From the NCBI RefSeq assembly GCF_006345805.1, contig NC_043010.1:14322001-14386000 (forward strand): a stretch of DNA of 64,000 bases, written 5' to 3'. This stretch comes from Octopus sinensis (lineage: Eukaryota). The notes under the pieces are model-generated. The model had not been told where the DNA came from and did not search any database. It saw only the letters and a list, made by a program, of their open reading frames with translations. Positions 2,986 to 64,000 of this stretch are shown one piece after another (position 1 is the stretch's first letter; the number at the start of each line of letters is the position of its first letter). The translations under genes and the position numbers were made by a program.

Positions 2986-3783
2986 TGCCTGTATATGAAT
3001 TACTTCTAATTAGAAATTTCATCTGATATCAGTTAATCAGGGTAAGTCCTTGTGTATTTTTAGAGGAGAGAGATATGTATGAAAGACTGATTAGTTCTCA
3101 GCTTAATTCCCATTTTTTGTTCTACCGGTCACTTTGCGTACATTTTGGTTTCTATAAATGAATTCCTTATCACATTTATTGATCTCGCTTCATGATATTT
3201 TCGTACTTTGTGTGTAGATTTACATTTGTTGAGGCAAGATTGCTCAACAAACAAAATATTGGACTTCAATCAGCTTTTGTTTCACTGGTTGAAATCCATT
3301 GCAGGCTTTTACTGTTATCTCTGAGAGGCGTGATACTTTATTTTTTTTTATCGATCCACCTCGTTTAGTTGTTGCGGTTTAAACACTTATCAGTATTGAG
3401 TAAAGTTAGTTGTTGCAAACTGGTATTCCACCGCCAGGGGAAGTCTGTTTTCTCATCCGTTTAATGCCAGAGAATGTAGTTGAAGTTAGTTAAATATTGG
3501 CATCTGTAGATGCTTGGTGGAAAGTTAAGTAAATGCTTTGTAGCTGATTTGTATATTTAATGTTCTCTGATATCGTTGACATTGTTTTAACATCCACTTT
3601 TCCATGCTTGCATGGATTGGATGGAGTTTACTGAGACAGATTTTTCTGTTTCCTGGATACCATTCCGGTTGCCATCCCGTACCCGTTTCGGAGCAAGGTA
3701 ATATTTCCCCTAGGCCAGACATGTTTTCACAGAATATTGGAAATTGACATTCATTTACAACAATCACGTGATGTCAAGACTAG

Positions 3784-3935
3784 GATACCTATTTCTTTAC
3801 TACCCACAAGGGGCTAGACATAAAGGGGACAAACAAGGACAGATAAATGGATCAAGTCGATTACATCGACCCCAGTGCGTAACTGGTACTTAATTTATCG
3901 ACCCTGAAAGGATGAAAGGCAAAGTCGACCTCGGT
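3784..3935 (-). mobile_element. Family C SINE body and tail without tRNA head, fused to U6
   Basis: Reverse complement reads ACCGAGGTCGACTTTGCCTTTCATCCTTTCAGGGTCGATAAA...GGGTAGTAAAGAAATAGG, matching the 3' part of the intact copy at 27521-27752. Confidence 0.9.
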
Positions 3936-4043
3936 AAAAAATATGGAACGCTTCACGAATTTGCGTGTCGTCCTTGCGCAGGGGCCATGCTAATCTTCTC
4001 TGTATCATTCCAATTTTAGAAAAAGTACCGCCGTAGCTAGTAC
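3936..4043 (-). pseudogene. U6: Full-length U6 snRNA retrocopy (108 nt)
   Basis: Reverse complement: GTACTAGCTACGGCGGTACTTTTTCTAAAATTGGAATGATACAGAGAAGATTAGCATGGCCCCTGCGCAAGGACGACACGCAAATTCGTGAAGCGTTCCATATTTTTT. ACAGAGA box, AGC triad and ISL are recognisable. The upstream flank is a decayed SINE rather than PSE/TATA, and there is an internal T5 run. Confidence 0.93.
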
Positions 4044-4682
4044 AAGACTAGAATAACCCCCACACAACTATAGTGGAAGACCCTTGACAAGGTGTCACAC
4101 AGTGAAACTGAACCCTAAACCATGTGATTGAACCCTAAGCTTTTTGTCCACAAAGCTAGGTCTTTATTGTGCTGCTACTGTATAAGTCAGAGATTTAGAA
4201 ATGCAATATTTCTAATATTTTATTTACTTGTCAGAAACTGTCCCTTAACAATAAATGCCCCTATGGCATTTTACTTTATGTATGGATGCAAATACTGACA
4301 GTTAAGATGCCATACATTGGTAGTTAACCTTCCGTATGGTACAAATAACTGGCTGTTGGGATACCAAACTGATTACTCTAATTACTCTAATTTCACCCAG
4401 TGAAGTAAGCATGGTTGGTTTAAAAATCTTGATCTGACTTCTCTAACTTTCCATTGGTTTTGTTCACTGTCACCATACACACGTCTAAATCAACTTTTTC
4501 ATCTCTTTATTTGTTGATTCCATTACAGTTCAGATATGAAGCTCACTGTTTTGTGTTCTCCTAATTTATAGTGTTTTTGGTACAGGCATTGGTACAAATA
4601 TTGAGACAGAGAAGAAGTTAGCAACAGGGTAGATTTAAAAACTTTTTTTTTTTTACATCAGTATCAAAAATGCTATAATTAT

Positions 4683-12697: not shown

Positions 12698-14009
12698 CAT
12701 ATTAGCTCTGATTGTCCAAAGTTACAGCATGCAGTCAGTTGAATGGTTAGGTGTGATACCACTTTTTCCTTTTTTGTAGTTATACGATGTTTCCATGAAG
12801 CTCGGGCCTAACTGTGTTCTCCAACTGCACTGATTCATTAGTAAGGTGTGCAGTGTAACAATCTTGGTATCTTAGCACACTCTCCTGTTTATTTTTCTGT
12901 AAACCATAGATTCTGGTGTTGAGCCTTGTGGAAGCAGGAAAGCAAGGTGGACTCGGGGTGCAACAGCTGCTGTTTCTCTGCACTTATCAGTGGCAGTGTG
13001 CATCCTGGTACAGTATTTGGATTAATGAGTGTATTGATGTTGCAGCTATTTCTGCATATTCTTTTTGCATTTGCCTGAAACTGAGCGAAAGGGAGTTGTA
13101 AACTACACGCTTTCACTAGTCAGTTAAGGTGAGACAGTGTCACATGACAACTTGCTAGGGCTGCCTGCTGGAGCCTAGCGGCAGGTATTTAAAGGGAAAA
13201 ATTTGACAAGTCAGTCAGTCAGTCACCGGCTGACACTCGCTGACGATACATCGAAGAGGCCAGGGAACAGAAGAAAGAAGACATGCACCCAACACCAGAG
13301 CTGAAGACACCTCCAAAAGGGGGAGCCCTGCCACGTCAAAACGGTAGAGGAGTAGGGGCCGAAACCGGACGTGGTTCCTCCTGATGATGTCTTGAGCTAA
13401 CTGGATCCTATAAAGGAGCTGTTGTGGTAGCAGACCACGAAACAGAAACACGGTTGTAATTCCTCAAGGTGTTTGTGTTTGGAAGTGATTTAAAAAAAAA
13501 AAAAATATTTTCAGATAGCGGATGGGACTGGTAACAAACCAATAATCCCTCCATATGCAGGCAGTCTTTCATTTTTACTGTCTTTTTGTTTTTTTTATGT
13601 AGTCTGTGGGTGGTTAGCCGTGTGAAATTTTTAATTGTGACTACTTCATTGTATTGTACTTTGCAGTTTATTGTTGAGGAATTAGTAGTCCAGACAGGAC
13701 TGACATAGTCTGTGATGGCTCAAATGTATTATTTATATACTATTGTTGTTGTTTCTTTGTTGGCAAAATACGGTATCTGTGAGTGCTCTAAGTATGTTTG
13801 TATGTTGTCACTGTTGTGGCGGTATATATATATAATTCTTTGTATTTTTATCCTATGTTTGTGGTATATTGTGTGTGATGGTTGGACGTAGTTAATGTTT
13901 TCTAACGTTGTTAGTATGAGTGTATATTTTGTGGGTGCTATTTCACATCTCTAGTGAAGGGGCCATGTTTCTTGAAAAGATTGAAAAGAGGGTTGGATTA
14001 CTTGTGAAG

Positions 14010-14444: not shown

Positions 14445-14575
14445 GAGTGTGATATCATCTGTGTATGAGGCTGTATGTTTTGTAGTGAGGGAAGAACGTG
14501 TAGGTAAATATTGAAAATGGTGGGTGATAGGACAAATCCTTGTGGCACTCCATTTTGCATGATGACAAGGTGGAC
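14445..14575 (-). mobile_element. Second, different non-LTR RT fragment
   Basis: Translates NGVPQGFVLSPTIFNIYL and, after a frameshift, SYTDDITLTS (YADD-like). Confidence 0.7.
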
Positions 14576-14689
14576 TTCAGTATGTGATGGATGGCAGCAT
14601 AGCGGCAGTTTGGAAGAATGAAGGGAAGAGTTGCTGCTCCTCTGCTCACTTGTAGCTGGTGTTGCTTACACTGCTGCTGCATAGTAGCA

Positions 14690-14835
14690 ACTGATGCCGA
14701 TGAGGGGTTGGCATTAGGAAGGGCATCCGGCTGTAAAAACCATGACAAATCAGAGTGAATTCTGGTGCAGCCCCTCAGCTTGCCAGCCCTGGTCAAACCA
14801 TCCAACCCATGCCAGCAATGGACAATGGATGTTAA
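14690..14835 (+). mobile_element. Family D SINE 3' fragment
   Basis: GTTGGCATTAGGAAGGGCATCC...CCAACCCATGCCAGCA. Confidence 0.7.
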
Positions 14836-15303
14836 ATAAGTAGTTTGCCAGGTAATATGTTGTATTGTCGTATAGCCCTTGGTCAGCATTGCAACTGTGA
14901 GCAGACCCCTCTTTTTGTAGTCAGGGTCTGCTATGCTGTCCAGTTTGATCCATCTTTAAAACAGTTGGAGTGTTGTTTGAGGGAGATTTGGCTGCTATTT
15001 TCAGCATGTTGAATGACTCGAGCATTTTGTGATTCTCAAGGTGGGCTTGAGTATTTTGTTTCGGTTGATAGTAGAAGAGTTAAGAATAGGTGGAGTGGCA
15101 TGCAGTGGATGTTTCTGCAGTTAAAGCTGTCATGTATTTCAGTTAGGTTGAGTGCAATCGTGTCATCCCACGTTGTGAGTTGGAGTCAGTGATCTGAGGG
15201 TTAGAAATGTCAAAGATGAGACTTTCTAGAATTTTTGGCGGGGTATCTAGGAGGACAATGGATTTGTATAAGTTTTCGTTGACATTTAGAATTATTTTCC
15301 CAA

Positions 15304-15931: not shown

Positions 15932-16775
15932 GCCTAAGCAAAACAATTGTATTTACCTTTTAGTGTTCTTGTTATTTTGTGTAGTTTTTAATTGGCTAAT
16001 TGAGAAATATGTAATAAATGCACTTGTTTGGGTGGATTGAGGTTTATCTTGTATTCTGGCATGAGGTGGTGATGGTGTTTTTGATGTTGCTAATTACTTC
16101 AAATACTGTTTTTTTACCGTTTGTTTTGTGATTTCTGTTCTATTGGATATGACTGTTTGCCAGTTTTTTTTACCCCTTAGTTATTTCCTTGTTTGATGCA
16201 GATTTCTGAGTTTATTTCTGTGGTTCAGGCATACTGTATTTGAGGCTGTCTTTGATTTTTTATGAGGTTTGCTTTTTCGGATGTGTAGTTAGGGTCTGTG
16301 ACGCACACAGCTGTGTGGTTGAGAAAATTGTTTCCTAGGTATGTGGTCTTGGGTTCAGTCCTACTCTGGGGAAAAGCGACTTCCACTATAGCCCCGGGCT
16401 GACCAAAGCCTTGTGAGTGGATTTGGTAGATGGGAACTGAAGGGAGTTCCAAAAATGTGTGTGTACCCTTATCTTGGTGGTTGTAAATGAGCAACCCCTC
16501 ATCATATAAGTAAGGTTATTCATTTCCAGCTTTCCATGAAGCTTTGTGAAAATATTACCTTTGCTTGGAAATGGGTGAGTGTTGGTCACAGAGCATTCTG
16601 TGACAGATCTGTCTCAACAAATTCTGACTCATGTAAGCACAGAAAAGTGAATGGTAAAAGATATGTATGAATAAACACTACACATGTTTATGGTTGCTAT
16701 TTAGGAACCACACTATGAATTAAATTGCAGCTTTTTTTTGTTTGTTAATTATTTAAATTAAGTTTTTAAAGTATA

Positions 16776-17163
16776 GGCGCAGGAGTGGCTGTGTGGTAAG
16801 TAGTTTGTTTACGAACCACATGGTTCCGGGTTCAGTCCCACTGCGTGGCACCTTGGGCAAGTGTCTTCCACTATAGCCTCGGCCCGACCAAAGCCTTGTG
16901 AGTAGATTTGGTAGACAGAAACTGAAAGAATCCCATCGTATATATGTATATATGTGTGTGTGTCTGTGTTTGTCCCCCCAACATCGCTTGACAACCGATG
17001 CTGGTGTGTTTATGTCCCCATAACATAGCAATTCGGCAAAAGACTGATAGAATAAGTACTAGGCTTACAAAGAATAAGTCCTTGGGTCGATTTGCTCGAC
17101 TAAAGGCGGTGCTCCAGCATGGCCACAGTCAAATGACAAACGGGTAAAAGAGTAAAGAGTAAA
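16776..17163 (+). mobile_element. Family A SINE, full length
   Basis: GGCGCAGGAGTGGCTGTGTGG...GTAAAAGAGTAAAGAG. Confidence 0.9.
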
Positions 17164-26979: not shown

Positions 26980-27520
26980 TTTATAATAAAAAATATATTA
27001 TAATCGTTTTCTGAATCACTTTCACTCACACTAGACCATCACTTGCAGATGCGATCACCAATTCTTAAGCGCTCGTAGATGGACTTTTAGATTTCATTTA
27101 AAAAAAAAAAAAAAGTTTGAGTTGTTTGTTTAGAAGAAGCTTTCTTTTTTTTTTGTTCTCTATAAATTTCTTGGTAATATGCAGAAGCACTTGTTATGGG
27201 AGTAGAAACTTTTGCACTTTGTTCAAAATTTGGATAAATGAAACTTGTAAACCTGGGGGTCCTTGTAAAGTGAGATTTTACTGTACATCTTTCGGAGCCT
27301 TCCAAGCATTTTATACAGTATATTTCATTGTTGTTCTTACTACTTTTATGTATCTGCTACATGCAAAATCCTCTTTGTCTTTTATCCTATCTGTAATCCT
27401 TCTCATCTTCCCCTTGTTCATCCATAGTTTACATAGGGTACACTGAATGAAATTCTTATCTGCATTTTTTTTGTCTTGTGTATTTATCACAGCTGCTTCC
27501 AGGTGGCGGTAGTGTCTTCA

Positions 27521-27752
27521 AAGGTGGTGAGCTGGCAGAAACTTTAGCACGCCGGCAAAATGCTTAGCTGTATTTCGTCTGCCGCTACGTTCTGAGTTCA
27601 AATTCCGCCGAGGTCGACTTTGCCTTTCATCCTTTCGGGGTCGATTAAATAAGTACCAGTTATGCACTGGGGTCGATGTAATCGACTTAATCCATTTGTC
27701 TGTCCTTGTTTGTCCACTCTGTGTTTAGCCCCTTGTGGGTAGTAAAGAAATA
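27521..27752 (+). mobile_element. Family C tRNA SINE, intact
   Basis: TGGCAGAA A-box region, GAGTTCAAATTCC B-box, GCCTTTCATCCTTTCGGGGTCGAT body; 13-bp TSD GGTAGTGTCTTCA. Confidence 0.88.
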
Positions 27753-27993
27753 GGTAGTGTCTTCATTACTGCTAACTAAAACTTTTACCTTTGTTTACTT
27801 TAAGATTTCTCAATTCTAAACTTTTCTATGTTTGGAATTTCTTTAAATGTTCGATAGATTCCACTATGCAAACTATGTCGGACTGTCATTAGCTTATAGT
27901 TCTCATAGATGTCAAATTAAAACAAGATGTAAGGAAAGGAAACAAACCCGAATATCAATAATCCCTTAAAATATTCAACTTATAACTGAGTTT

Positions 27994-29543: not shown

Positions 29544-29877
29544 ACTCTTTTACTTGTTTCAGTCATGTGACTGTGGCCGTGCTGGAGCACCGCATTTGGA
29601 CTTATTCTATCAGTCTCTTTTGCCGAACCGCTAAGTTACAGGAACGTAAACACACCAGCATCGGTTGTCAAGCGATGTTGGGGGGACAAACACAGACACA
29701 AACATATACATATATACAACGGGCTTTTTTCAGTTTCCGTCTACCAAATCCACTCACAAGGCTTTGGTCGGCTTGAGGCTATAGTAGAAGACACTTGCCC
29801 AAGGTGCCACGCAGTGGGACTGAACCCGGAACCATGTGGTTGGTAAGCAAGCTACTTACCACACAGCCACTCCTACG
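29544..29877 (-). mobile_element. Family A SINE
   Basis: Reverse match with a small internal deletion. Confidence 0.88.
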
Positions 29878-29932
29878 CGTATATAAATTTTTTTGTTGTC
29901 TGGGTCTTCAAGTATTGACTAATGGTTTAGAT

Positions 29933-32748: not shown

Positions 32749-33554
32749 ATATATATTGGGTAGTTTCACTGAAACTGTGCTGTGAGAGGGTTATTTACTG
32801 ATGTAGCTACTATATTTGAATGTATGTTTGAATGTATGTTTAGTGTGTGGAGAACTGGCGCTTGGAAATGGTGTGAAGTTGGAAGGAAAAGGTGTGTTGC
32901 TATGATTTATGGAAGTGCGATGCGAGGGATGAATATGGAATGGCAAAAAAAGGAAAAATGCTGGGAAGAAGGAATGAGACTGGTCTGGCAGATGTGTAGA
33001 TTTGTTGAGAGAGAGAGAGAGAGAAAGAAAGCCCCCCCCCCCGTGGTGAAGATAATAAATTGCAGGGAATGATAGGGATTGAATTGGTAATGGATACTAC
33101 AAAGAGAAAAGGGATGAAATAGCTGGGGTCATGTACTGAGGAAGGATAAAGTTGACTGGGTGATGGGGAATGATGGAAATGAATGTGGAAGGAAGTGGAT
33201 GAGGATGTGGAGGAGGAGGACTGAGAAAGTCATAGCTAAAGATAATGGAGGTGGAAATAAAGGCAAAGGGATTGGTTAAGGGAGTAGAGGATTGGTAAAG
33301 TGGGTGCCACCAATCCTAAAAGGCTAACTCCTGCTTTAACTGGGGAAATATAGAGATATGTTGTGACATGAGAGGAAAACTAATTGAAGAATCTATAAAA
33401 TTTTGCAAGGAAATATAATGGAGAGCTTTTTGTTTTTATACCTATGGGAACACTAAACTAATTTCTGTGAGCTAAGGGAACGGTATCCTTGGATCCGAGG
33501 TGTTACACTCACAAAATACTGCCTTATGTCCTCTATAAATTAATACCCCACATA

Positions 33555-33955
33555 GGCGCAGGAGTGGCTGTGTGGTAAGTAGCTTGCTAACCAACCACAT
33601 GGTTCCGGGTTCAGTCCCACTGCGTGGCATCTTGGGCAAGTGTCTTCTGCTATAGCCCCGGGCCGACCAATGCCTTGTGAGTGGATTTGGTAGACGGAAA
33701 CTGAAAGAAGCCTGTCGTATATATGTATATGTGTGTGTGTGTGTGTGTTTGTGTGTGTGTTTGTCCCCCTAGCATTGCTTGACAACCGATGCTGGTGTGT
33801 TTACGTCCCCGTCACTTAGCGGTTCAGCAAAAGAGACCGATAGAATAAGTACTGGGCTTACAAAGAATAAGTCCCGGGGTTGATTTGCTCGACTAAAGGT
33901 GGTGCTCCAGCATGGCATCAGTCAAATGGCTGAAACAAGTAAAAGAGTAAAGAGT
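33555..33955 (+). mobile_element. Family A SINE, full length
   Basis: High similarity to 4683-5098. Confidence 0.9.
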
Positions 33956-39767: not shown

Positions 39768-40202
39768 AGAATGTATGAAAGAAAGGCTAAATGGTCTCAA
39801 AAATTTGTCTTGTGAAGAAAGGCTGAGGACGCTTGACTTTTATTCTCTAGAAAAACGCCGCCGCCGTGGTGATCTCATTCTCGCTCACAACATCATAAGC
39901 GGAAAGTGTAACCTCTCGAAAGAGCTGTTCTTCACTCCTGCTCCGGAGCGTCGGCTGCGGGGTCATTCCGAAAAGCTCTACCTGCGACGAAGGAATCGAA
40001 GGAGAGGAGCTTTCTCCATCTGGGTTGCGGATCCGTGGAACAAGCTGCCAGACGAGATGAAGATGCTGACGACCGCTTTGTTCAAAGTCTCCCTTGACCT
40101 CAAGTGGCCTGAACTCTTTACATGAACACCACCCTGTACTTAACTCCATGTCCCCCTACATGGCCTTGCTTTTTGCTTTTGAGCCAAAAATTAACTAACT
40201 AA
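39768..40202 (+). mobile_element. CR1-clade LINE ORF2 C-terminus and 3' UTR
   Basis: EERLRTLDFYSLEKRRRRGDLI...LRGHSEKL...WNKLPD, typical CR1 C-terminal motifs; (AACT)n tail. Confidence 0.9.
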
Positions 40203-40378: not shown

Positions 40379-40780
40379 GGATCTTTTCAGTTTGAACAGC
40401 AGTTTTTTCTAGCGGTGTCATATGAAATTGTCACCCATAATTATGACCCTAGAATCGATCTATTGCATTTCAATCTGTTTTAGGGGTGGGGGAAGGGTAT
40501 CTTTTTTTCTTCAGAAATGTAAATAAACCCAATCTGTTTCTTAAACGAGGAACATATTCATACGGCACAGAATGTTTTCACCTCAATAGACATCATTGAT
40601 TGGTTGAAATTGCAGAAATTGAAGGAAAAAAACAACAAATATCTTACAAACTATAGAATTTTCTCAATAAAGCCAAGAGAAAAAGATGTTATAAACACAT
40701 TCTACCAGTATACGAAGTTTAAAAGTTTTTAGTTCTCTAAAAAATATTGTTAAAACTGCCGTTCAAACCGAAAAAGATCC
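40379..40780 (-). mobile_element. hAT-type GGATC MITE
   Basis: TIRs present; TSD GTTGTTTT/GTTTTTTT. Confidence 0.88.
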
Positions 40781-41360
40781 GTTTTTTTTTTTGTTATTGT
40801 TTGTTACATAAGAAATTTAGAATTACAGAGTAGATTTGTTTTTGATCCACTTTATACAACAGAAAACAAAAATGTGGTCCTAATGAATCTCTAGAAGAAT
40901 TAACTTCTTTACTCTTGTGTCGAGAAGTGTGGAGGGTTTGATTTGGGATTCCAGATGGCTCTTGTAATTTTATTTCGTAATTAGGGGACAGTTTTTTTTT
41001 TTTTTCACTCACTTTTGCTTGATCAAGAATGTTTTTGTGTGTGTGTTGGTAGGCTTTATTTACTTAATGCTTTCCCTGTTTTTTAATAAATGTGATTTAT
41101 TGAAAATTATAGTAAATGCCATATTTTAATTTTTTATTTTATTGATATTTGGTGATTTTTAAACAATGTGCAGTTGAAAGCTACGGTTGATTGAATCAAT
41201 ATGATGGCCTCTGGCCAACAGTAATCATTGTTGCCATCATCATCATCATCAAGATTATCTTCGATGCAGCTTAGACCCAAGTCAGTCTTAATTAAAATTA
41301 AGCAGAGCTATGATCAAAACCATTCAAAAGATAATTCTTTTTTTGTTTTTTAGATACTGT

Positions 41361-41751
41361 TTTACTCTTTTACTTGTTTCAGTCATTTGACTGCGGCCAT
41401 GCTGGAGCACCGCCTTTTAGTCGAGCAACTCGACCCCGGGACTTATTCTTTTGTAAGCCCAGTACTTATTCTATCGGTCACTTTTGCCGACTGCTAAGTA
41501 ACGGGGACATAAACACACCAGCATCGGTTGTCAAGCAATGCTAGGGGGACACACACACACACACACGCATATATATATATACATATATACGACAGGCTTC
41601 TTTCAGTTTCCGTCTACCAAATCCACTCACAAGGCTTTGGTCGGCCCGAGACTATAGTAGAAGACACTTGCCCAAGGTGCCACGCAGTGGGACTGAACCC
41701 GGAACCATGTGGTTGGTAAACAATCTACTTACCACACAGCCACTCCTGCGC
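41361..41751 (-). mobile_element. Family A SINE, full length
   Basis: Reverse match. Confidence 0.9.
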
Positions 41752-42067
41752 TATAGTGTACTCTGGACTACATTACCCAGTTTTTTTTTTAAAGACAGTG
41801 ATGGGATTTGTGGGAGATATTGCAGCTATTTCTAGCAAGTTATGTGACTATGGAAAGGCTTCCTCATTGGCTTGTCTAGAGGTTCCTATTGCTGCCATCA
41901 TAATGAGCATTGGGGGCATAGCCAACATTTCTGTCATTACTGTTCTCATTATTGCTTTTTGCATCATCATCGATGACCTCATAAACCACATGGTCAGTAC
42001 TGCACTAACTTGACCTCATTCTTTGTGATTTGCCATAAATTTGTACTTTATAGTAAGAATTTTTTAA

Positions 42068-44648: not shown

Positions 44649-46196
44649 AAGGTCATAGGTGGAATTGCCTTTTTGATCACAGGACTGTCTTACCTGGGGC
44701 TAAATAACTAGAACATGATGCATAAACCCTGCTTGTCTCTGTTTGCATGCCTGGCACCTACTTGATTGCTGGTTAGTAGTAGAAAGGCAGCAGCAGACTT
44801 GCAGCAGTCACAACAATATGCCACTCTGCAAATTTATCCACACTGACTGTCCCACCCATGCAAAATATATAGAACATGAAAAATCAGAAACCAAATGTAA
44901 ATTTCTTGTACGAATGCCAAAACATTGAACAAACAAAAGATGAGAAAAGAAATTTCCTTATTTTGCCAATTCTTCATTGAGTTTGGCACAGGAAGCTGGT
45001 TTGCTTTCTCAGCAACAGATGATTATTTTTGTTTGTTTTTTATTTTGCTTCAGTTGTTGTTGTTGTTGTTGTTGTTGTTGAAGTTGATGACTTGTACAGT
45101 GTTCAGTTGTTTCAATGTTTAGAATGTAATGTGAAACTGCCATCTTTTAAACATCATTTAAAGCATAATTGATGAATGTGATAACCTGTTAAGTGGGAGG
45201 TCCACGTCGGATGGGATTTTGTTTCCAGGTTTTATATATATAATCTAGCATTCAATTTGGGGGTGGCCACGCTCCTCTTTCTGCGAGGGACAAACATTTG
45301 AGCTGAACACATTGTAACTTAACAAAATGCACCTACAGTGTTGCTGCTAGAGCCATTGAAAGAGCCTATGAATACTCTCTCATTGGCTCAACCGGCTAGA
45401 AATAGCAGCTAAATCTCCCTTAGATCAGACCTTATAGCCTTACAAAAGGATACATTAGATAATATTCTGGGTAAACTATTCCAGAAGAAAATTTGGTCCA
45501 AACCGTAATGGCCTTTGATTGTAGGATTGTCCACCCTTATGGGAGCTGTTGTGTTTGTGTGTATGTGTGTGTGTGTGTGTGGGGGGGCTAAACAACAGCG
45601 ATATAACAATGTTGTTGCTGTATTTGTTGGTATATTGTTTTTTCTAAGAGATACTTTGGTGTTATTTCTGTTTGATGGCATATTGTAATAGCTTAGTTGG
45701 GCTGCATTGATGATAGAAAAAGGACCTTTGTCATGAAATATAATGCTAACACTGGTGACAAGATAGAATTACCAAACCCTTTTAGTATTGCAACAGTCTT
45801 TACATGCATTCCTATGATACTGTTCACTTGAAACCGGTTCAAGCCAAAGGGGAAGCTTCTACATTGTTGCTTGTTCTGTCAGAATTAGCAGCCAAATCTC
45901 CTGCAAATCACAACCTACTGTTTTTACAAATGCAAGGACACAAATAGTTCCTCAAATAAACTGCCTGGTCATGGCTGGAATGCTTCTGATTGCAGAACTG
46001 CTTGATCAGGATACTTGTTTGCGAAAGTGTTGTAAATCTGGTTGGGTGTTTAGTTCAAGTGACTTTTCATTAGATCATTTTTGTTTATGTTGGTAATTGA
46101 TGGATATGGACTGTAGTCTATGTACAACTTATGATGATGCAAAAGTGTCCTTTTATTTATCTGTGTAGTCTTTGATTTTTTTTTTTTTTATAGCGC

Positions 46197-46532
46197 TGCC
46201 ATGACTGGCTTCTGTGCCGGTGGCATGTAAAAAGCACCATCCGAACATGGCTGATGCCAGTGCCGCCTTGACTGGCTTCCATGCCGGTGGTACGTAAAAA
46301 GCACCGATCTGATTATGGCCGTTGCCAGCCTTGCCTGGCACCTGTGACGGTGGCACGTAAATAGCACCCACTACACTCACAGAGTGGTTAGCATTAGGAA
46401 GGGCATCCAGCTGTAGAAACACTGCCAGATCAGACTGGAGCCTGGTGCAGCCTTCTGGCTTCCCAGATCCCGGTCGAACCGTCCAACCCATGCTAGCACG
46501 GAGAATGGACATTAAACGATGATGATGATGAT
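46197..46532 (+). mobile_element. Family D SINE with diverged 5' tandem units
   Basis: Three GGTGGCACGTAAAAAGCACC-type units, then body and (GAT)n tail. Confidence 0.8.
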
Positions 46533-48119: not shown

Positions 48120-48750
48120 TGTACCCGGCAAGACTAGTGAAGCCATAACCCGTGGCCCCTACCTGGGACGTAGTCAGTCCACCTGTGCATACCTTCCTTC
48201 TTGTGACACTTGTGAAGACCTGTTGAGGCAAGTGAGAATCGAATCAAATCAAATCAAATCGAACCAAATCAAAATAGATGAACATCAATGGAATTTGTAT
48301 CCTTGTGGTACCAGTGCCGGTGGCACATAAGAAAACCATCCGAACGTGACCGTAGCCAGTACCGCAACGACTGGCCTCCGTGCTGAGGGCACGTAACAAA
48401 CACCATCCGAGCGTGGCCGTCCGCCAGCCTCGTCTGGCACCTGTGTCGGTGACACATAAGAAAACACCATCCGAGCGTGGCCGTCAGCCAGCCTCGTCTG
48501 GCACCTGTGTCGGTGGCACATAAAAAACACCATCCGAGCGTGGCCGTCTGCCAGCCTCGTCTGGCACCTGTGTCGGTGGCACATAAAATCACCCACTACA
48601 CTCTCGGAGTGGTTGGCGTTAGGAAGGGCATCCAGCTGTAGAAACACTGCCAGATCTGACTGGCCTGGTGCAGCCTTCGGGCTTGCCAGACTCCAGTTGA
48701 ACCGTCCAACCCATGCTAGCATGGAAAGCGGACGTTAAACGATGATGATG
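48120..48750 (+). mobile_element. Longest family D copy (upstream segment, (AATCA)n linker, tandem ~62-66 bp units, tail)
   Basis: Tandem units at 48310-48595 and (GAT)n end; assignment of 48120-48300 to the element is inferred. Confidence 0.7.
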
Positions 48751-50578: not shown

Positions 50579-50810
50579 CCTATTTCTTTACTACCAACAA
50601 GGGGCTAAACACAGAGAGCACAAACAAGGACAGACAAACGGATTAAGTCGATTATATCGACCCCAGTGTGTAACTGGTACTTATTTAATCGACCCTGAAA
50701 GGTTGAAAAGCAAAGTCAACCTCGGTGGAATTTGAACTCAGAACGTAGCGGCAGGCGAAATACCGCAAATATTTCGCCTGGCGTGCTAACGTTTCTTCCA
50801 GCTCGCCGCC
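50579..50810 (-). mobile_element. Family C SINE, full length
   Basis: Reverse match to 27521-27752. Confidence 0.85.
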
Positions 50811-51128
50811 TTGGGGATATTACCTGATGTTGAATAGTGGGTTATCTAGCAGTTGATTTTTGCTATGGAAACGAGTTGTGAGCTCCTTACTATTTGAGTT
50901 TTTTTTTGTTTTTAACATGGTAGAAAGTGACTTCAGTTAATGTGAAAAGATTTGTTTTTCTAGCGTTGGTGGTGTTTAGAATCTATGGTAGTAACTATGG
51001 TGCTGGCAGTGGTGGTGTCAGGGTCTATGGTGGCTTTGGCATTAGAATCAACAGTGGTGATGGTAGCAGTGATGTTTGAATCTGTGGTAGTGTTTGTGGC
51101 ATAAGGTTGCATAAACAACTGAAATAAT

Positions 51129-51911: not shown

Positions 51912-53001
51912 TCACAGCTACCTGCTGAACTGCCATGTATGTAGTTTTCATCTCCCCGAGTACTTTTAAAGGTCTGGATTGACCTTAGTAAGTAGATTGA
52001 ACCAGGGACCCTGTGATTGTTCACAGCTACCTGCTGAACTGCCATGTATGTAGTTTTCATCTCTCCGAGTACTTTTAAAGGTCTGGATTGACCTTAGTAA
52101 GTGGATTGAACCAGGGACCCTGTGATTGCTCACAGCTACCTGCTGAACTGCCATGTATGTGGTTTTCATCTCCCCGAGTACTTTTAAAGGTCTGGATTGA
52201 CCTTAGTAAGTGGATTGAACCAGGGACCCTGTGATTGCTCACAGCTACCTGCTGAACTGCCATGTATGTAGTTTTCATCTCCCCGAGTACTTTTAAAGGT
52301 CTGGATTGACCTTAGTAAGTGGATTGAACCAGGGACCCTGTGATTGTTCACAGCTACCTGCTGAACTGCCATGTATGTGGTTTTCATCTCCCCGAGTACT
52401 TTTAAAGGTCTGGATTGACCTTAGTAAGTGGATTGAACCAGGGACCCTGTGATTGCTCACAGCTACCTGCTGAACTGCCATGTATGTGGTTTTCATCTCC
52501 CCGAGTACTTTTAAAGGTCTGGATTGACCTTAGTAAGTAGATTGAACCAGGGACCCTGTGATTGTTCACAGCTACCTGCTGAACTGCCATGTATGTAGTT
52601 TTCATCTCCCCGAGTACTTTTAAAGGTCTGGATTGACCTTAGTAAGTAGATTGAACCAGGGACCCTGTGATTGTTCACAGCTACCTGCTGAACTGCCATG
52701 TATGTAGTTTTCATCTCCCCGAGTACTTTTAAAGGTCTGGATTGACCTTAGTAAGTGGATTGAACCAGGGACCCTGTGATTGCTCACAGCTACCTGCTGA
52801 ACTGCCATGTATCTAGTTTTCGTCTCCCCGAGTACTTTTAAAGGTCTGGATTGACCTTAGTAAGTGGATTGAACCAGGGACCCTGTGATTGCTCACAGCT
52901 ACCTGCTGAACTGCCATGTATGTGGTTTTCATCTCCCCGAGTACTTTTAAAGGTCTGGATTGACCTTAGTAAGTGGATTGAACCAGGGACCCTGTGATTG
53001 C
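51912..53001. repeat. Tandem array of ten 109-bp units
   Basis: Units start at 51912, 52021 ... 52893; they differ mainly at three transition sites. Confidence 0.97.
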
Positions 53002-53299
53002 TAAGTGAACTTGTTGAGCATTTAGTCATACCTGTGTCATCACACAATCCATGCGCATAATACAGACATGCCGGTACACACCCTCACTCTTGCTATACAA
53101 ACCGTGCTTGTTTCAATTTGCTTGATTAATGGAAAAACAGGTTCCACACCCCACTTCATGACTGAGTGGTTTACTCTGAATTCAGTTGCTTCAACAAACA
53201 CTTCCCATCTATTCAAACAGAGAAATGACAGCGTAAAAATAGGAAAACAAAGAAGACAAAAAAAAAAAACAATCCCTTTTTTTTTTTTTTGCTGTCGCC

Positions 53300-53686: not shown

Positions 53687-54278
53687 TATTTCTTTACTAC
53701 CCACAAGGGGCTAAACACAGGGGACAAACAAGGACAGACAAACGGATTAAGTTAACATCGACCCCCAGTGCGTAACTGGTACTTAGTTTATCGACCTTGA
53801 AAGGATGAAAGGCAAAGTCGACCTCGGAGGAATTTGAACTCAGAACGTAGCGACGGGCGAAATACCTATTTCTTTACTACCCACAAGGGGCTAAACACAG
53901 AGGGGACAAACAAGGACAGACAAACAGATTAAGTTGATTACATCGACCCCAGTGCTTAAATGGTACTTAATTTATCGACCCCGAAAGGATGAAAGGCAAA
54001 GTCGACCTCGGCGGAATTTGAACCCAGAACGTAGCGATGGGCGAAATACCTATTTCTTTACTACCCGCAAGGGGCTAAACACAGAGGGGACAAACAAGGA
54101 CAGACAAACGGATTAAGTTGATTACATTGACCCCAGTGCTTAAATGGTACTTACTTTATCGACCCCGAAAGGATGAAAGGCATAGTCGACCTCGGCGGAA
54201 TTTGAACCCAGAACGTAACAGCAGACAAAATACGGCTACACATTTCGCCCGGTGTGCTAACGGTTCTGCCAGGTCACC
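53687..54278 (-). mobile_element. Family C SINE head-to-tail trimer
   Basis: Units begin at 53687, 53867 and 54051; only the 54051-54278 unit has the full head. Confidence 0.9.
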
Positions 54279-58077: not shown

Positions 58078-58348
58078 GATGATGATCATCATCTTTTGAC
58101 ATCATCATCATCATTGTTCGACCGTGGTCAAGACAATGGAATTTACTATGTCAGGCCAGACTTCACGGTCCATCATAGCATTACGGAGGTCCTGTTGCTG
58201 GATGCTTGTATCCCTGGAGATTACATCAGGGTAGGAGAGTGTGCGCCCTCTGGTATCGCGAGCAGATGGCTTCCAGAGGAGAAGAGTAGAAATTACCTCG
58301 TTTTCAGCTCTACAACAATGTCCAGCAAACTGGACTCTTCTACCTTTC
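58078..58348 (-). mobile_element. RTE-clade LINE 3' fragment
   Basis: KGRRVQFAGHCCRAENEVISTLLLWKPSARDTRGRTLSYPDVISRDT...TTVEQ plus (GAT)n. Confidence 0.88.
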
Positions 58349-59610
58349 TTTTGACATAGTTGAACAACCAATTCCAACCAGTCTAGATTTACGGTATATT
58401 TGACTTTCACACCCAACCCTGGTGCTTGATTCAGTTGCATTATTCCTCCTTTCAATCAGTGAATACAAAAACGTGGATCATGAGAGCTCCTTTCAAGGGA
58501 TTATCCCTGAATCATCATCTCACCCTTGTAACTCCCTTTCATTCCATTGATCTTTGCACGTACAGGAGAGTCATCCCCTTTCCCTTTTTGCTTTAACACA
58601 ATATTGGATGGCCTTTGGCTCTCTGGAGTTCTGCTCTTGGTCAGGTTTTGGTTTTTTATCCTGCAGAATGTCCAATAATCCACCCTCCTTACGAAGCAAA
58701 CTTGGTGGGGTTGCTGATTTAGCCACCGATAACCTGACCATGCTCCAGGTTGTACTTAGTAGTGCACAAGAGTGACCTGACAGTAAACCGTGGGAGTTTT
58801 TGTACAACTACTGAAGGGGTCGTAGGATAACGGGACACAGCTGATCTTAAGTTGTATCATGTGAGCTTGGCTTTGATGGTCTTCCTCACAAAACTAATAA
58901 TTCATTTATCTATTTTGGAAAGACTGACTAATGAGAGAAAAAAAAAATCTGAAATTGTACTTGAATACAGGGATGAGAGTTCGTTATACATTTTCCCCAT
59001 TCTTCCTTCATTTGTCTCAATTCTGATATTATCAATCTTAGAAAATTCAACTCCTAAACAGTTAAAATATCCAGCCTGGACAGGAAGAAAAGCAAAATTG
59101 ATCTTGGCAGAATTTGAACTCAGATATAATAATGCTTCTAATTCAGGGGTAAGATTGGTATTTTGAGGGAAGGGGATTAGTTGAGCCCATTGATCTCAGT
59201 ATTTGACTTTTTATTTATTTATTTATTTTTGACTCTGGGGGGATGAAATGCAAAGTTGACCTTGGTGGGATCTGAACACAAAATGTAATGAACTACAAGA
59301 GACACTCAAAGTATATTTGTTGGTTGCTGTAACATTTTTGCCAATCCAGCTCCTAAAATCCTATCCTCTACTGGCACGAGGCCTGAAATTTTGTGGGGAG
59401 AGAGCTAGTTGATTACATCGACCCCCAGTGTCCAACTGGTATTTATTTTATTGATACTGCAAAGATAGAGCTGGAAGAAATGCTGCTTAGCACATTGTCT
59501 GGTGTGCTAACAATTCTGCCAGCTTGCTTTGTAATGGTGATATTTGCCACTAGGGCCTATTCATGTGTATTTAAATTACAATAAACATACTACAAAAAAT
59601 ATATATATAT

Positions 59611-62473: not shown

Positions 62474-63622
62474 CTAAACATGGGCATGTTAGATAACGCA
62501 GTTCTAGTTGCATTTGGGGTGGGGTGGGTGCGGGGGTTGGAGAGGGAGGACAGGGTGGTCATAGGTCTATAGTGCTATGTGACACTCCCTCCTAATTGTT
62601 GTCTGGAGTTTCACCTGCTGCTGAATCTAGTCTGTATTTCCTCATTTCTGTGAGTCATTGTTGTTTGTCAGTCAGCCAGTCATCTTCACTTGTAAATATT
62701 ATGGCCCGGGGAGAGAGAAAGAGCAAGCGCTGGAGTGTCCTTCAATTTTGGCTTGTATAAACATTAGATTGTGTTTTCTCTCATTGCTGTTCTTACCTTC
62801 GTTTGGACCTTAGATTCAAAGTTTTTTTATTTTGTGAAGATTAAAAAACATACCATTTTTTGGGGGGGGAAATTTTAGGCTTTATGATGTAATGCTTGTG
62901 TATCCTGTATATATGTGTGTGTGTGTATAACCTGTTACTAATTCTCTATTGTATATGTATTTGTTACACAAACACCAGTTTTTACAACCACTTTTGAATA
63001 TCCTGTTATACACCAAATTCTACCACACACACACACACACTCTCTCTCTCTCTCTGTCGCTCGCACACACTTTACATTGTTAGCTTAAGTCCGCTTTGCT
63101 TTTCATACTCCAGGATCAATAAAATAAGTCCTGGTATTGATGTAACTGGCTTGACCTTAAAAGGCAGTGCAATAGCATGGCAACAGCCCAATGGCCAAAC
63201 CCACTGAATACTCATACTCAATAAAATTTGTTTTCATTGTGTTTATTACAAAATTTGAATTGTTATTTTAAACTCCTATGTTACTTATGGCCCATCCTAT
63301 TTAAATTACATTTTTCCTCATTGTTAATTTGATCTCCAGAGTATTTTTTTTTTTTATATAATTCACTATGTTTCAGTTGGTTTAATTTCCAATCACCATG
63401 TGTCTGATTCCTTGATGTGTGTGTAACTCTTACGTTAGATTTAATCCAGAAACTTCTATTGCTTAATTAAAGATAGTTCTTACCCAAGCAGTCACCAGTG
63501 TGTACAGTCTGGGATTATATCCATATACACATTCAGGAATGAGACTTGATAATGGTTGTAAATGAAACTGATTGAAATATGTGGATCTAAGCATACACAC
63601 ACATGGACACGCACGCGTGCGC

Positions 63623-63785
63623 GACGGGCTTCTTTCAGTTTCCGTCTACCAAATCCACTCACAAGGCTTTGGTCGGCCCGAGGCTATAGTAGAAGACACT
63701 TGCCCAAGGTGCCACGCAGTGGTACTGAACCCGGAACCATGTGGTTGGTAAGCAAGCTACTTACCACACAGCCAATCCTACGCCT
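63623..63785 (-). mobile_element. Family A SINE 5' half
   Basis: Head and CORE-like region only. Confidence 0.85.
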
Positions 63786-64000
63786 ATGCAGATAAGAAAA
63801 ATTCAAAGAATTGTATAAGACAAATGCTCACTCTGTGTGTATGTATATTTGTGTATACACCATAAGTATGCACACACATGTATGTTTATATGTGTACATG
63901 TTTACATTCCTGTGTACATGTGTAATATATAGTTTATAGATTAGAGACAGGTATTCTTCGTAGAGAATTCACTTTGTAGTGCTCAAGAAATTTAAACTTG

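Follow-up and report, generated by a model that had tools for sequence, protein, structure and literature searches.

A U6 small nuclear RNA joined to the body and tail of a SINE in Octopus sinensis: a probable one-off chimeric retropseudogene

Organization of the locus

A stretch of 64,000 nucleotides of the Octopus sinensis genome (NCBI RefSeq assembly GCF_006345805.1, contig NC_043010.1, positions 14,322,001 to 14,386,000; hereafter the window, which is free of N) carries on its minus strand a full-length copy of the U6 small nuclear RNA (snRNA) joined directly to the 3' part of a short interspersed element (SINE) of a family designated here as C. The composite unit is bracketed by a target-site duplication (TSD) and lies next to an older SINE of a second family, designated A. 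In the order in which they are met along the minus strand, the features of the locus are the following.

4068–4156, minus strand: old, degraded copy of a family-A SINE, forming the upstream flank
4043–4058, minus strand: upstream TSD copy, with the exact core CTAGTCTTG at 4051–4043 and the extended form GGTTATTCTAGTCTTG
3936–4043, minus strand: retrocopy of the complete U6 snRNA (full length, 108 nt with the T6 at its 3' end), identified by covariance match to RF00026
4020–4024, minus strand: internal T5 at U6 positions 20–24, resembling an RNA polymerase III (Pol III) terminator; other U6 genes have ATATA here
3936–3941, minus strand: oligo-T tract (T6) that forms the 3' end of U6, at the junction
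3935, minus strand: junction A, either an untemplated base or SINE position 87
3786–3934, minus strand: body and tail of a family-C SINE (reference positions 88–236), without head and B-box
3775–3789, minus strand: downstream TSD copy, with the exact core CTAGTCTTG at 3783–3775 and the extended form GGTATCCTAGTCTTG

The RF00026 covariance model matches positions 4043–3937 of the minus strand with 107 bits, against a gathering score of 44, and spans model positions 1–105 without truncation; it is the only match at the gathering level that Rfam returns for the window. The 5' stem-loop, ACAGAGA box, AGC triad and 3' oligo-U that define U6 are all present, the ACAGAGA box and the triad being intact and GATACAGAGAAGATTAGC and the terminal T6 present; conserved positions are altered in two places (AACG>AATG and GGATGAC>GGACGAC). 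The 5' hairpin has the same folded architecture as its human counterpart (5 bp, bulge of 1 nt, 2 bp, tetraloop of UNCG type). A first-pass annotation of the stretch had described here a complete minus-strand U6 with a 5' hairpin that differs from that of human U6 and still pairs, and with an internal T5, all of which was borne out with minor refinement of the coordinates.

Beyond the T6, the minus strand continues with a single A (3935) and then, from 3934, with CCGAGGTCGAC... of the SINE. At this junction (T6-A-CCGAGG) the two parts lie in the same orientation, with at most 1 nt unassigned and without intervening genomic DNA. The SINE part is 93.3% identical over 149 nt to the reference copy of family C (27521–27756) and reaches the usual 3' terminus of the family, ...GTAGTAAAGAAATA(GGTA), at 3790 (3786). 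Six family-C copies, the chimera among them, were found in the 64 kb, two of which are full-length copies with their own TSDs.

27521–27752, plus strand: reference full-length family-C copy, with the 13-nt TSD GGTAGTGTCTTCA at 27508–27520 and 27753–27765
50579–50812, minus strand: second full-length family-C copy, with the TSD GGTAATATCCCCAAG / GGCAATAACCCCAAG and an A at position 87

Position 87 of the SINE varies between copies (G, A or T) and is an A in the second full-length copy; the junction A may thus belong to the SINE, as its first base, or be untemplated. In full-length copies a B-box-like motif, GAGTTCAAATTCC, occupies SINE positions 74–86, directly 5' of the breakpoint. Positions 1–87, including this motif, have been replaced by U6, and no A/B-box head is left. 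The earlier description of U6 joined to the SINE just past the B-box, in place of a tRNA head, holds for the position of the joint, with family C resuming at position 88, and for the replacement of the head. The tRNA nature of that head was not confirmed: ARAGORN detected no tRNA in the window and Rfam none on the reference SINE copy at E <= 10, and the B-box-like motif is the one feature that would suggest a tRNA-derived head.

Two explanations of the position of the breakpoint were considered and rejected. It does not coincide with a module boundary of the SINE, which relatives in O. bimaculoides place near position 167 and not at 88, nor with a stop of the reverse transcriptase (RT) at an m1A58-like position of the T-loop, from which, reasoning from the sequence, the breakpoint is displaced by 5–6 nt in the 3' direction.

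Target-site duplication and single insertion

The repeat that flanks the chimera, CAAGACTAG, is exact over 9 nt (3775–3783 and 4043–4051), and the match lengthens to about 15 nt when GGTTATTCTAGTCTTG is compared with GGTAT-CCTAGTCTTG. The last G of the upstream copy (4043) may instead be nucleotide 1 of U6. When the unit was placed at random as a control in the window, which is rich in repeats, a flanking repeat of 9 nt or more lying no further than 3 nt from each end turned up in 0.4% of placements; random sequence would give about 2e-4. No flanking repeat was found around U6 alone or around the SINE part alone. Since the repeat brackets the whole unit and neither of its parts, the single insertion proposed in the first-pass annotation, in which U6 and the SINE part entered the site in one retro-event, is supported, and the equal divergence of the two halves (see below) fits their insertion together. 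Comparison with paralogous empty sites, provided by other family-A copies, gave a clear alignment up to 16 nt before the insertion point and 47% identity beyond it.

The TSDs of the two canonical family-C copies (GGTAGTGTCTTCA and GGTAATATCCCCAAG) start with GGTA and that of the chimera with GGT(T)A. A GGT(A/T) start is therefore common to three TSDs of family-C type (27508–27520/27753–27765; 50813–50827/50564–50578; 4043–4058/3775–3789), which points to the same integration machinery for the chimera and for the canonical copies. Such a start speaks for a target preference of the partner endonuclease or for microhomology priming with the RNA end ...AAAUAGGUA.

Divergence and decay

Natural U6 genes for comparison were retrieved from metagenome contigs via their spurious open reading frames (ORFs). 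Prokaryote-style gene callers translate through U6 and have thereby produced hundreds of spurious database 'proteins' with the motif KIGTIQRRLAWPLRKDDTQIREAFHIF, of which P0001 and P0002 are examples; metagenome contigs from eukaryotes carry several U6 genes close together, as at 37–144 and 1655–1761 of contig L002 (ENA ERZ27264515 k141_849355). At 369–475 of contig L003, a U6 gene with a TATA-like box of its own shares the GTAC...GGTAC 5' stem with the octopus copy. Because this natural gene carries the same stem, the A3–U17 pair found in place of human G3–C17 belongs to a natural class of U6 variants and is not a product of decay.

Relative to the L003 gene, the U6 half has seven differences in 107 positions (6.5%), namely C6A, T10A, A20T, A22T, A24T, C38T and T72C. 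For the SINE half, 9 of 145 positions (6.2%) depart from the majority consensus of the five other family-C copies of the window, ordinary copies of which diverge by 4–10%. C38T (AACG>AATG) is a transition at a CpG. The corresponding Thr codon is retained in 102 of 112 U6-derived ORFs and shows the same change to Met in seven, and a CpG change that recurs in this way fits pseudogene decay. The TTTTTC variant occurs in none of the 112 other U6-derived ORFs and in neither of the two natural U6 genes. Of the two peculiarities that the first-pass annotation had proposed to compare with true U6 genes, the altered 5' stem thus proved to be shared with a gene of metagenomic origin, and the TTTTT did not. 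The T5 may derive from a variant source gene that predates the insertion, or from clustered mutation.

A repeat analysis of O. vulgaris reported a burst of SINEs and long interspersed elements (LINEs) at a Jukes–Cantor distance of 0.065, about 18 million years ago (PMC13282606). The 6.2% divergence of the SINE half is equivalent to a distance of approximately 0.065 and, used as a date, would place the insertion within a matching burst.

Upstream flank and transcriptional competence

A functional U6 gene would have a type-3 promoter, with a TATA box at about −30 and a proximal sequence element at about −55 (a general position and not an octopus consensus), and an unaltered invariant core. At this locus an old family-A SINE makes up the 90 nt upstream of the TSD, and the CTATAG located approximately 25–31 nt upstream of U6 is part of the conserved core of that SINE and not a U6 TATA box; conserved positions of the U6 are altered and it contains the internal T5. 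On these features the copy does not qualify as a functional U6 gene. Since it has neither a U6 promoter nor the A and B boxes of the SINE, and oligo-T terminators lie ahead of the tail, the product is likely to have been dead on arrival and to have decayed by about 6% thereafter.

Family A itself is very abundant, with at least 18 copies in the 64 kb (for example at 16770–16990, 29700–29890, 33550–33760, 41580–41760 and 63600–63790). Its members display A- and B-box-like motifs and a core ...GGCACCTTGGGCAAGTGTCTTCTACTATAGCC..., and a TA/TG microsatellite follows each copy. We take the core GGCACCTTGGGCAAGTGTCTTCTACTATAGCC to resemble the Deu domain.

Family C and the surrounding repeats

Antisense ORFs of family C match three database proteins, the named ones being both from O. 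bimaculoides (LOC106868243 and A0A0L8HB77_OCTBM), in keeping with a host that is an octopus or closely related to one. A 76-kb locus of that species (CM046612.1:3410827–3487124) contains about 20 related SINE copies, most of which share positions 1–167 and continue with another tail (for example 66042–66209, 12928–13085 and 69437–69604), while the C-type tail is present in one copy (40605–40784). Judged from these alignments, this arrangement indicates that family C and its relatives would form a modular SINE superfamily with exchangeable tails and a boundary near position 167. Neither U6 nor any other Rfam match was found in these 76 kb.

Within the window, family C also occurs as a head-to-tail array on the minus strand (53687–54278), in which one near-full copy precedes two that begin anew at SINE position 50. 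Tandem Repeats Finder (TRF) reports for it a period of 184, 2.9 copies and 94% identity, and the junction between units, ...AAATAG followed by GTATTTCG, shares GTA; the array is a SINE turning into a small satellite. At about 700 bp from it lies a 109-bp satellite (51912–53002; ten copies, 98% identity). Internal tandem repeats of 61–63 bp (2435–2672 and 48306–48588; about four copies, 83–88% identity) are found inside another dispersed repeat family, which also yields the ORFs 2399–2789, 46153–46512 and 48285–48722.

Inspected by eye, the ORFs of at least 50 amino acids in the window comprise only fragments of transposable elements and low-complexity frames. LINE fragments recognized in this way, at 58111–58455 (minus strand), at about 17.3 kb, at 14455–14889 (minus strand) and at 39775–40125 (plus strand), correspond to RTE-like C-termini, a reverse-transcriptase-like ORF and another LINE C-terminus, none of which has the family-C tail.

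Origin of the chimera

The U6–SINE unit is probably a one-off chimeric retropseudogene that arose in a single event of target-primed reverse transcription. We infer from its structure that a single cDNA, with U6 at the 5' end followed by the 3'-terminal 149 nt of an RNA of SINE family C, was integrated by the LINE machinery that family C usually employs. The RT of this LINE would bind the specific, non-poly(A) 3' tail of the SINE and nick a GGT(A/T)-type target within the old family-A SINE; starting at the 3' end of the SINE RNA, it would then copy as far as position 87/88, directly 3' of the B-box-like motif, and carry on along the U6 snRNA from the oligo-U 3' end to nucleotide 1. Synthesis of the second strand would finally yield the target-site duplication of about 9–15 nt.

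Granted a one-off single event, the two RNAs are somewhat more likely to have been joined by template switching, in which the RT, on coming to the 5' terminus of a truncated SINE RNA or stalling there, would jump to the U-tail of U6, perhaps after adding one untemplated nucleotide. This route is slightly favoured because a precedent with a stringent retrotransposon partner exists and because one untemplated nucleotide is possible at the junction; on the same premise, ligation would have a little less than an even chance.

Considered across all scenarios, ligation of the RNAs before reverse transcription is a possibility to be held tentatively. An RtcB-type ligase would connect a U6 ending in a 2',3'-cyclic phosphate with a SINE fragment whose 5'-OH lies at position 87/88, and the chimeric RNA, which retains the SINE tail, would then be retrotransposed. 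Both in vitro and in HeLa extracts, L1 and other RNAs with a 5'-OH are joined by RtcB to such U6 (U6>P), and U6/L1 chimeric RNAs exist independently of retrotransposition, RtcB ligation having been shown for the human case (Moldovan et al., 2019; PMC6789731). Ligation accounts for U6, the snRNA with a cyclic-phosphate end, being the usual 5' partner, and would give a full-length U6 joined exactly at its U-tract, as found here; should the A at 3935 represent SINE position 87, the junction contains no additional base. On the other hand, the mechanism has been demonstrated in human cells and with L1 only, it is not apparent what would cut the SINE RNA at position 87/88 to leave a 5'-OH, and the tract at the junction has six T against the five U of the major mature human form (PMC6789731), a human value that may not be that of octopus. 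Nothing in the sequence separates this route from template switching.

It is unlikely, though less so than the scenarios that follow, that the copy belongs to an undescribed family of U6-headed retroposons, in which a master locus produces U6–SINE transcripts with a fixed junction that a LINE amplifies. Such a master might consist of a genuine U6 gene immediately followed by a truncated SINE, transcribed by Pol III read-through, or of a chimera within an RNA polymerase II (Pol II) transcript. Families headed by snRNAs do exist: the SINEU elements have U1 or U2 heads and contain oligo-T, their mode of transcription being unknown (PMC4494074), and true families of this kind are recognized by shared junctions, subfamilies and master copies (Kojima, 2015; PMC4494074). 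The presence of one chimera among just six family-C copies in 64 kb also speaks for a family, of which the clustered T5 change could be diagnostic. It is disfavoured because the A/B-box head has been lost, the U6 promoter is external, and T5 and T6 precede the SINE tail, so that Pol III transcripts would lack the tail needed by a stringent LINE. The first-pass annotation had already pointed to the external promoter and the internal T-runs, which indeed favour a one-off product. The Pol III features offer no route by which the whole unit, tail included, could be transcribed; Pol II read-through is possible.

No second copy of the junction was found in the window or in the 76 kb of O. bimaculoides. 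Five junction-spanning frames were compared with a protein database, and the 120 matches listed were all U6-only ORFs from assorted eukaryotes, none extending into the SINE; a SINE control matched just three proteins, so that this database contains almost no octopus ORFs and the comparison lacks power. Neither the junction pattern nor a SINE-tail control had a match in JGI metagenome contigs, and the control had none in IMG/VR either, these being collections without host DNA, in which such a negative carries no information. An exact look-up of the window ORFs in a contig index, including the 37-amino-acid ORF that spans the junction, recorded none.

The classifier label 'SINE/U' normally reflects similarity to U1 or U2 and not to U6, which counts against a further possible sign of a family. 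The automated repeat annotation of O. vulgaris contains one 'SINE/U' family (369,490 bp; 19 young insertions) and one 'U-L1' family, both left undiscussed (PMC13282606). If a U6-headed family exists in octopods, the chimera may relate to the former entry, and such a family would be the first of SINE-like type to combine a U6 head with an external-promoter master.

Two independent events, in which a truncated SINE inserted at the T-tract end of a U6 gene or pseudogene, or a U6 at the edge of a truncated SINE, are highly unlikely. Insertions do cluster in this repeat-dense region, and oligo-T/A tracts can be targets of some LINE endonucleases. However, neither part has a flanking repeat of its own, the sequence that follows the SINE (GGTATCCTAG...) matches the sequence preceding U6 and not the 3' end of U6, and both halves are equally diverged. 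Moreover, the upstream sequence is a family-A SINE without a promoter, whereas the natural U6 genes recovered have their own TATA-like box. An assembly or sequencing chimera between a U6 locus and a SINE copy is scarcely credible, since misassembly, which repeats commonly cause, would yield neither the matching outer duplication of 9–15 nt nor a junction exactly at the 3' end of U6, and the window has no N.

Several points nevertheless weigh against a one-off origin by target-primed reverse transcription with template switching. The T5 results from three A>T transversions within 5 nt (ATATAC>TTTTTC), which is unlike the scattered substitutions of neutral decay. The junction A is no proof of untemplated addition, as it could be SINE position 87, which is an A in the copy ending at 50812, and the observed structure would be obtained by either joining route, between which the sequence does not discriminate. 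The uniqueness of the junction is an assumption beyond the 64-kb window and the 76 kb of O. bimaculoides. Finally, the partner LINE was not found: no LINE in the window or in the O. bimaculoides locus shares the family-C tail.

Relation to known chimeras

The first-pass annotation, which cited only U6–LINE1 chimeras, overrated the novelty of the structure. U6–SINE chimeras are already known from platypus and Anolis, and what is new here is the phylum. In platypus, TSD-flanked chimeras of U6 with L2 and with the SINE Mon-1 have been described, and in Anolis U6 is joined to L1, L2 and RTE LINEs and, in six cases, to AnolisSINE2; template switching to U6 was concluded to be general to retrotransposons without long terminal repeats (non-LTR), among them 'stringent' ones that depend on a particular 3' tail (Doucet et al., 2015; PMC4476161). 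As in the U6/Mon-1 and U6/AnolisSINE2 chimeras, the 'Group IV' of that study, the octopus unit has a sense U6 fused by its 3' end to a 5'-truncated, non-poly(A) SINE with a LINE-recognized tail, a short TSD around the whole and no promoter, which makes it a dead-on-arrival pseudogene. It differs from them in its mollusc, rather than vertebrate, host and in the identity of the SINE family and of the partner LINE. The octopus U6 is full-length, in contrast to the U6/L2 chimeras of platypus, which are almost all 5'-truncated, and its TSD is of 9–15 nt as opposed to 1–9 nt in platypus (PMC4476161).

Mammalian U6/LINE-1 pseudogenes (Buzdin, 2002; Gilbert, 2005; Garcia-Perez, 2007; Moldovan, 2019) likewise combine, in one event, a full-length U6 with a poly-T end and a variably 5'-truncated retroelement between TSDs, the involvement of RtcB having been demonstrated for the human case only. 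In contrast to these, the 3' partner in octopus is a specific-tail SINE and not a poly(A) L1, which would implicate a stringent LINE instead of L1 ORF2p.

The crocodilian SINEU elements resemble the octopus unit in having an snRNA 5' part on a LINE-recognized 3' part and an internal oligo-T that argues against Pol III transcription, and an origin by template switching was proposed for them (Kojima, 2015; PMC4494074). They are, however, multi-copy families with subfamilies and masters, whereas the octopus chimera is known from a single copy; their heads are U1 or U2, while the head here is U6, the product of a type-3 Pol III gene. Outside vertebrates, the MINE/WEIRD-MGL chimeric retrogenes of Magnaporthe grisea show that a LINE can also fuse a small non-coding RNA to a 5'-truncated retroelement (Gogvadze et al., 2007; PMC2104539); they differ in their fungal host, in the RNA partner and in having a LINE, instead of a SINE, as the 3' part.

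Significance

A single decayed copy has no evident function. Capture of U6 by non-LTR machinery, previously described in mammals, monotremes and a lizard, is extended by the octopus chimera to a lophotrochozoan, with a SINE whose tail is specific and not poly(A). Natural octopus junctions could help to discriminate between template switching and RNA ligation, and a census of octopus U6 chimeras could serve to date active LINE/SINE pairs, as has been done in mammals. The finding supports the view that LINE reverse transcription, or the chemistry of the U6 3' end, has as a general property the joining of U6 to retroelement RNA.

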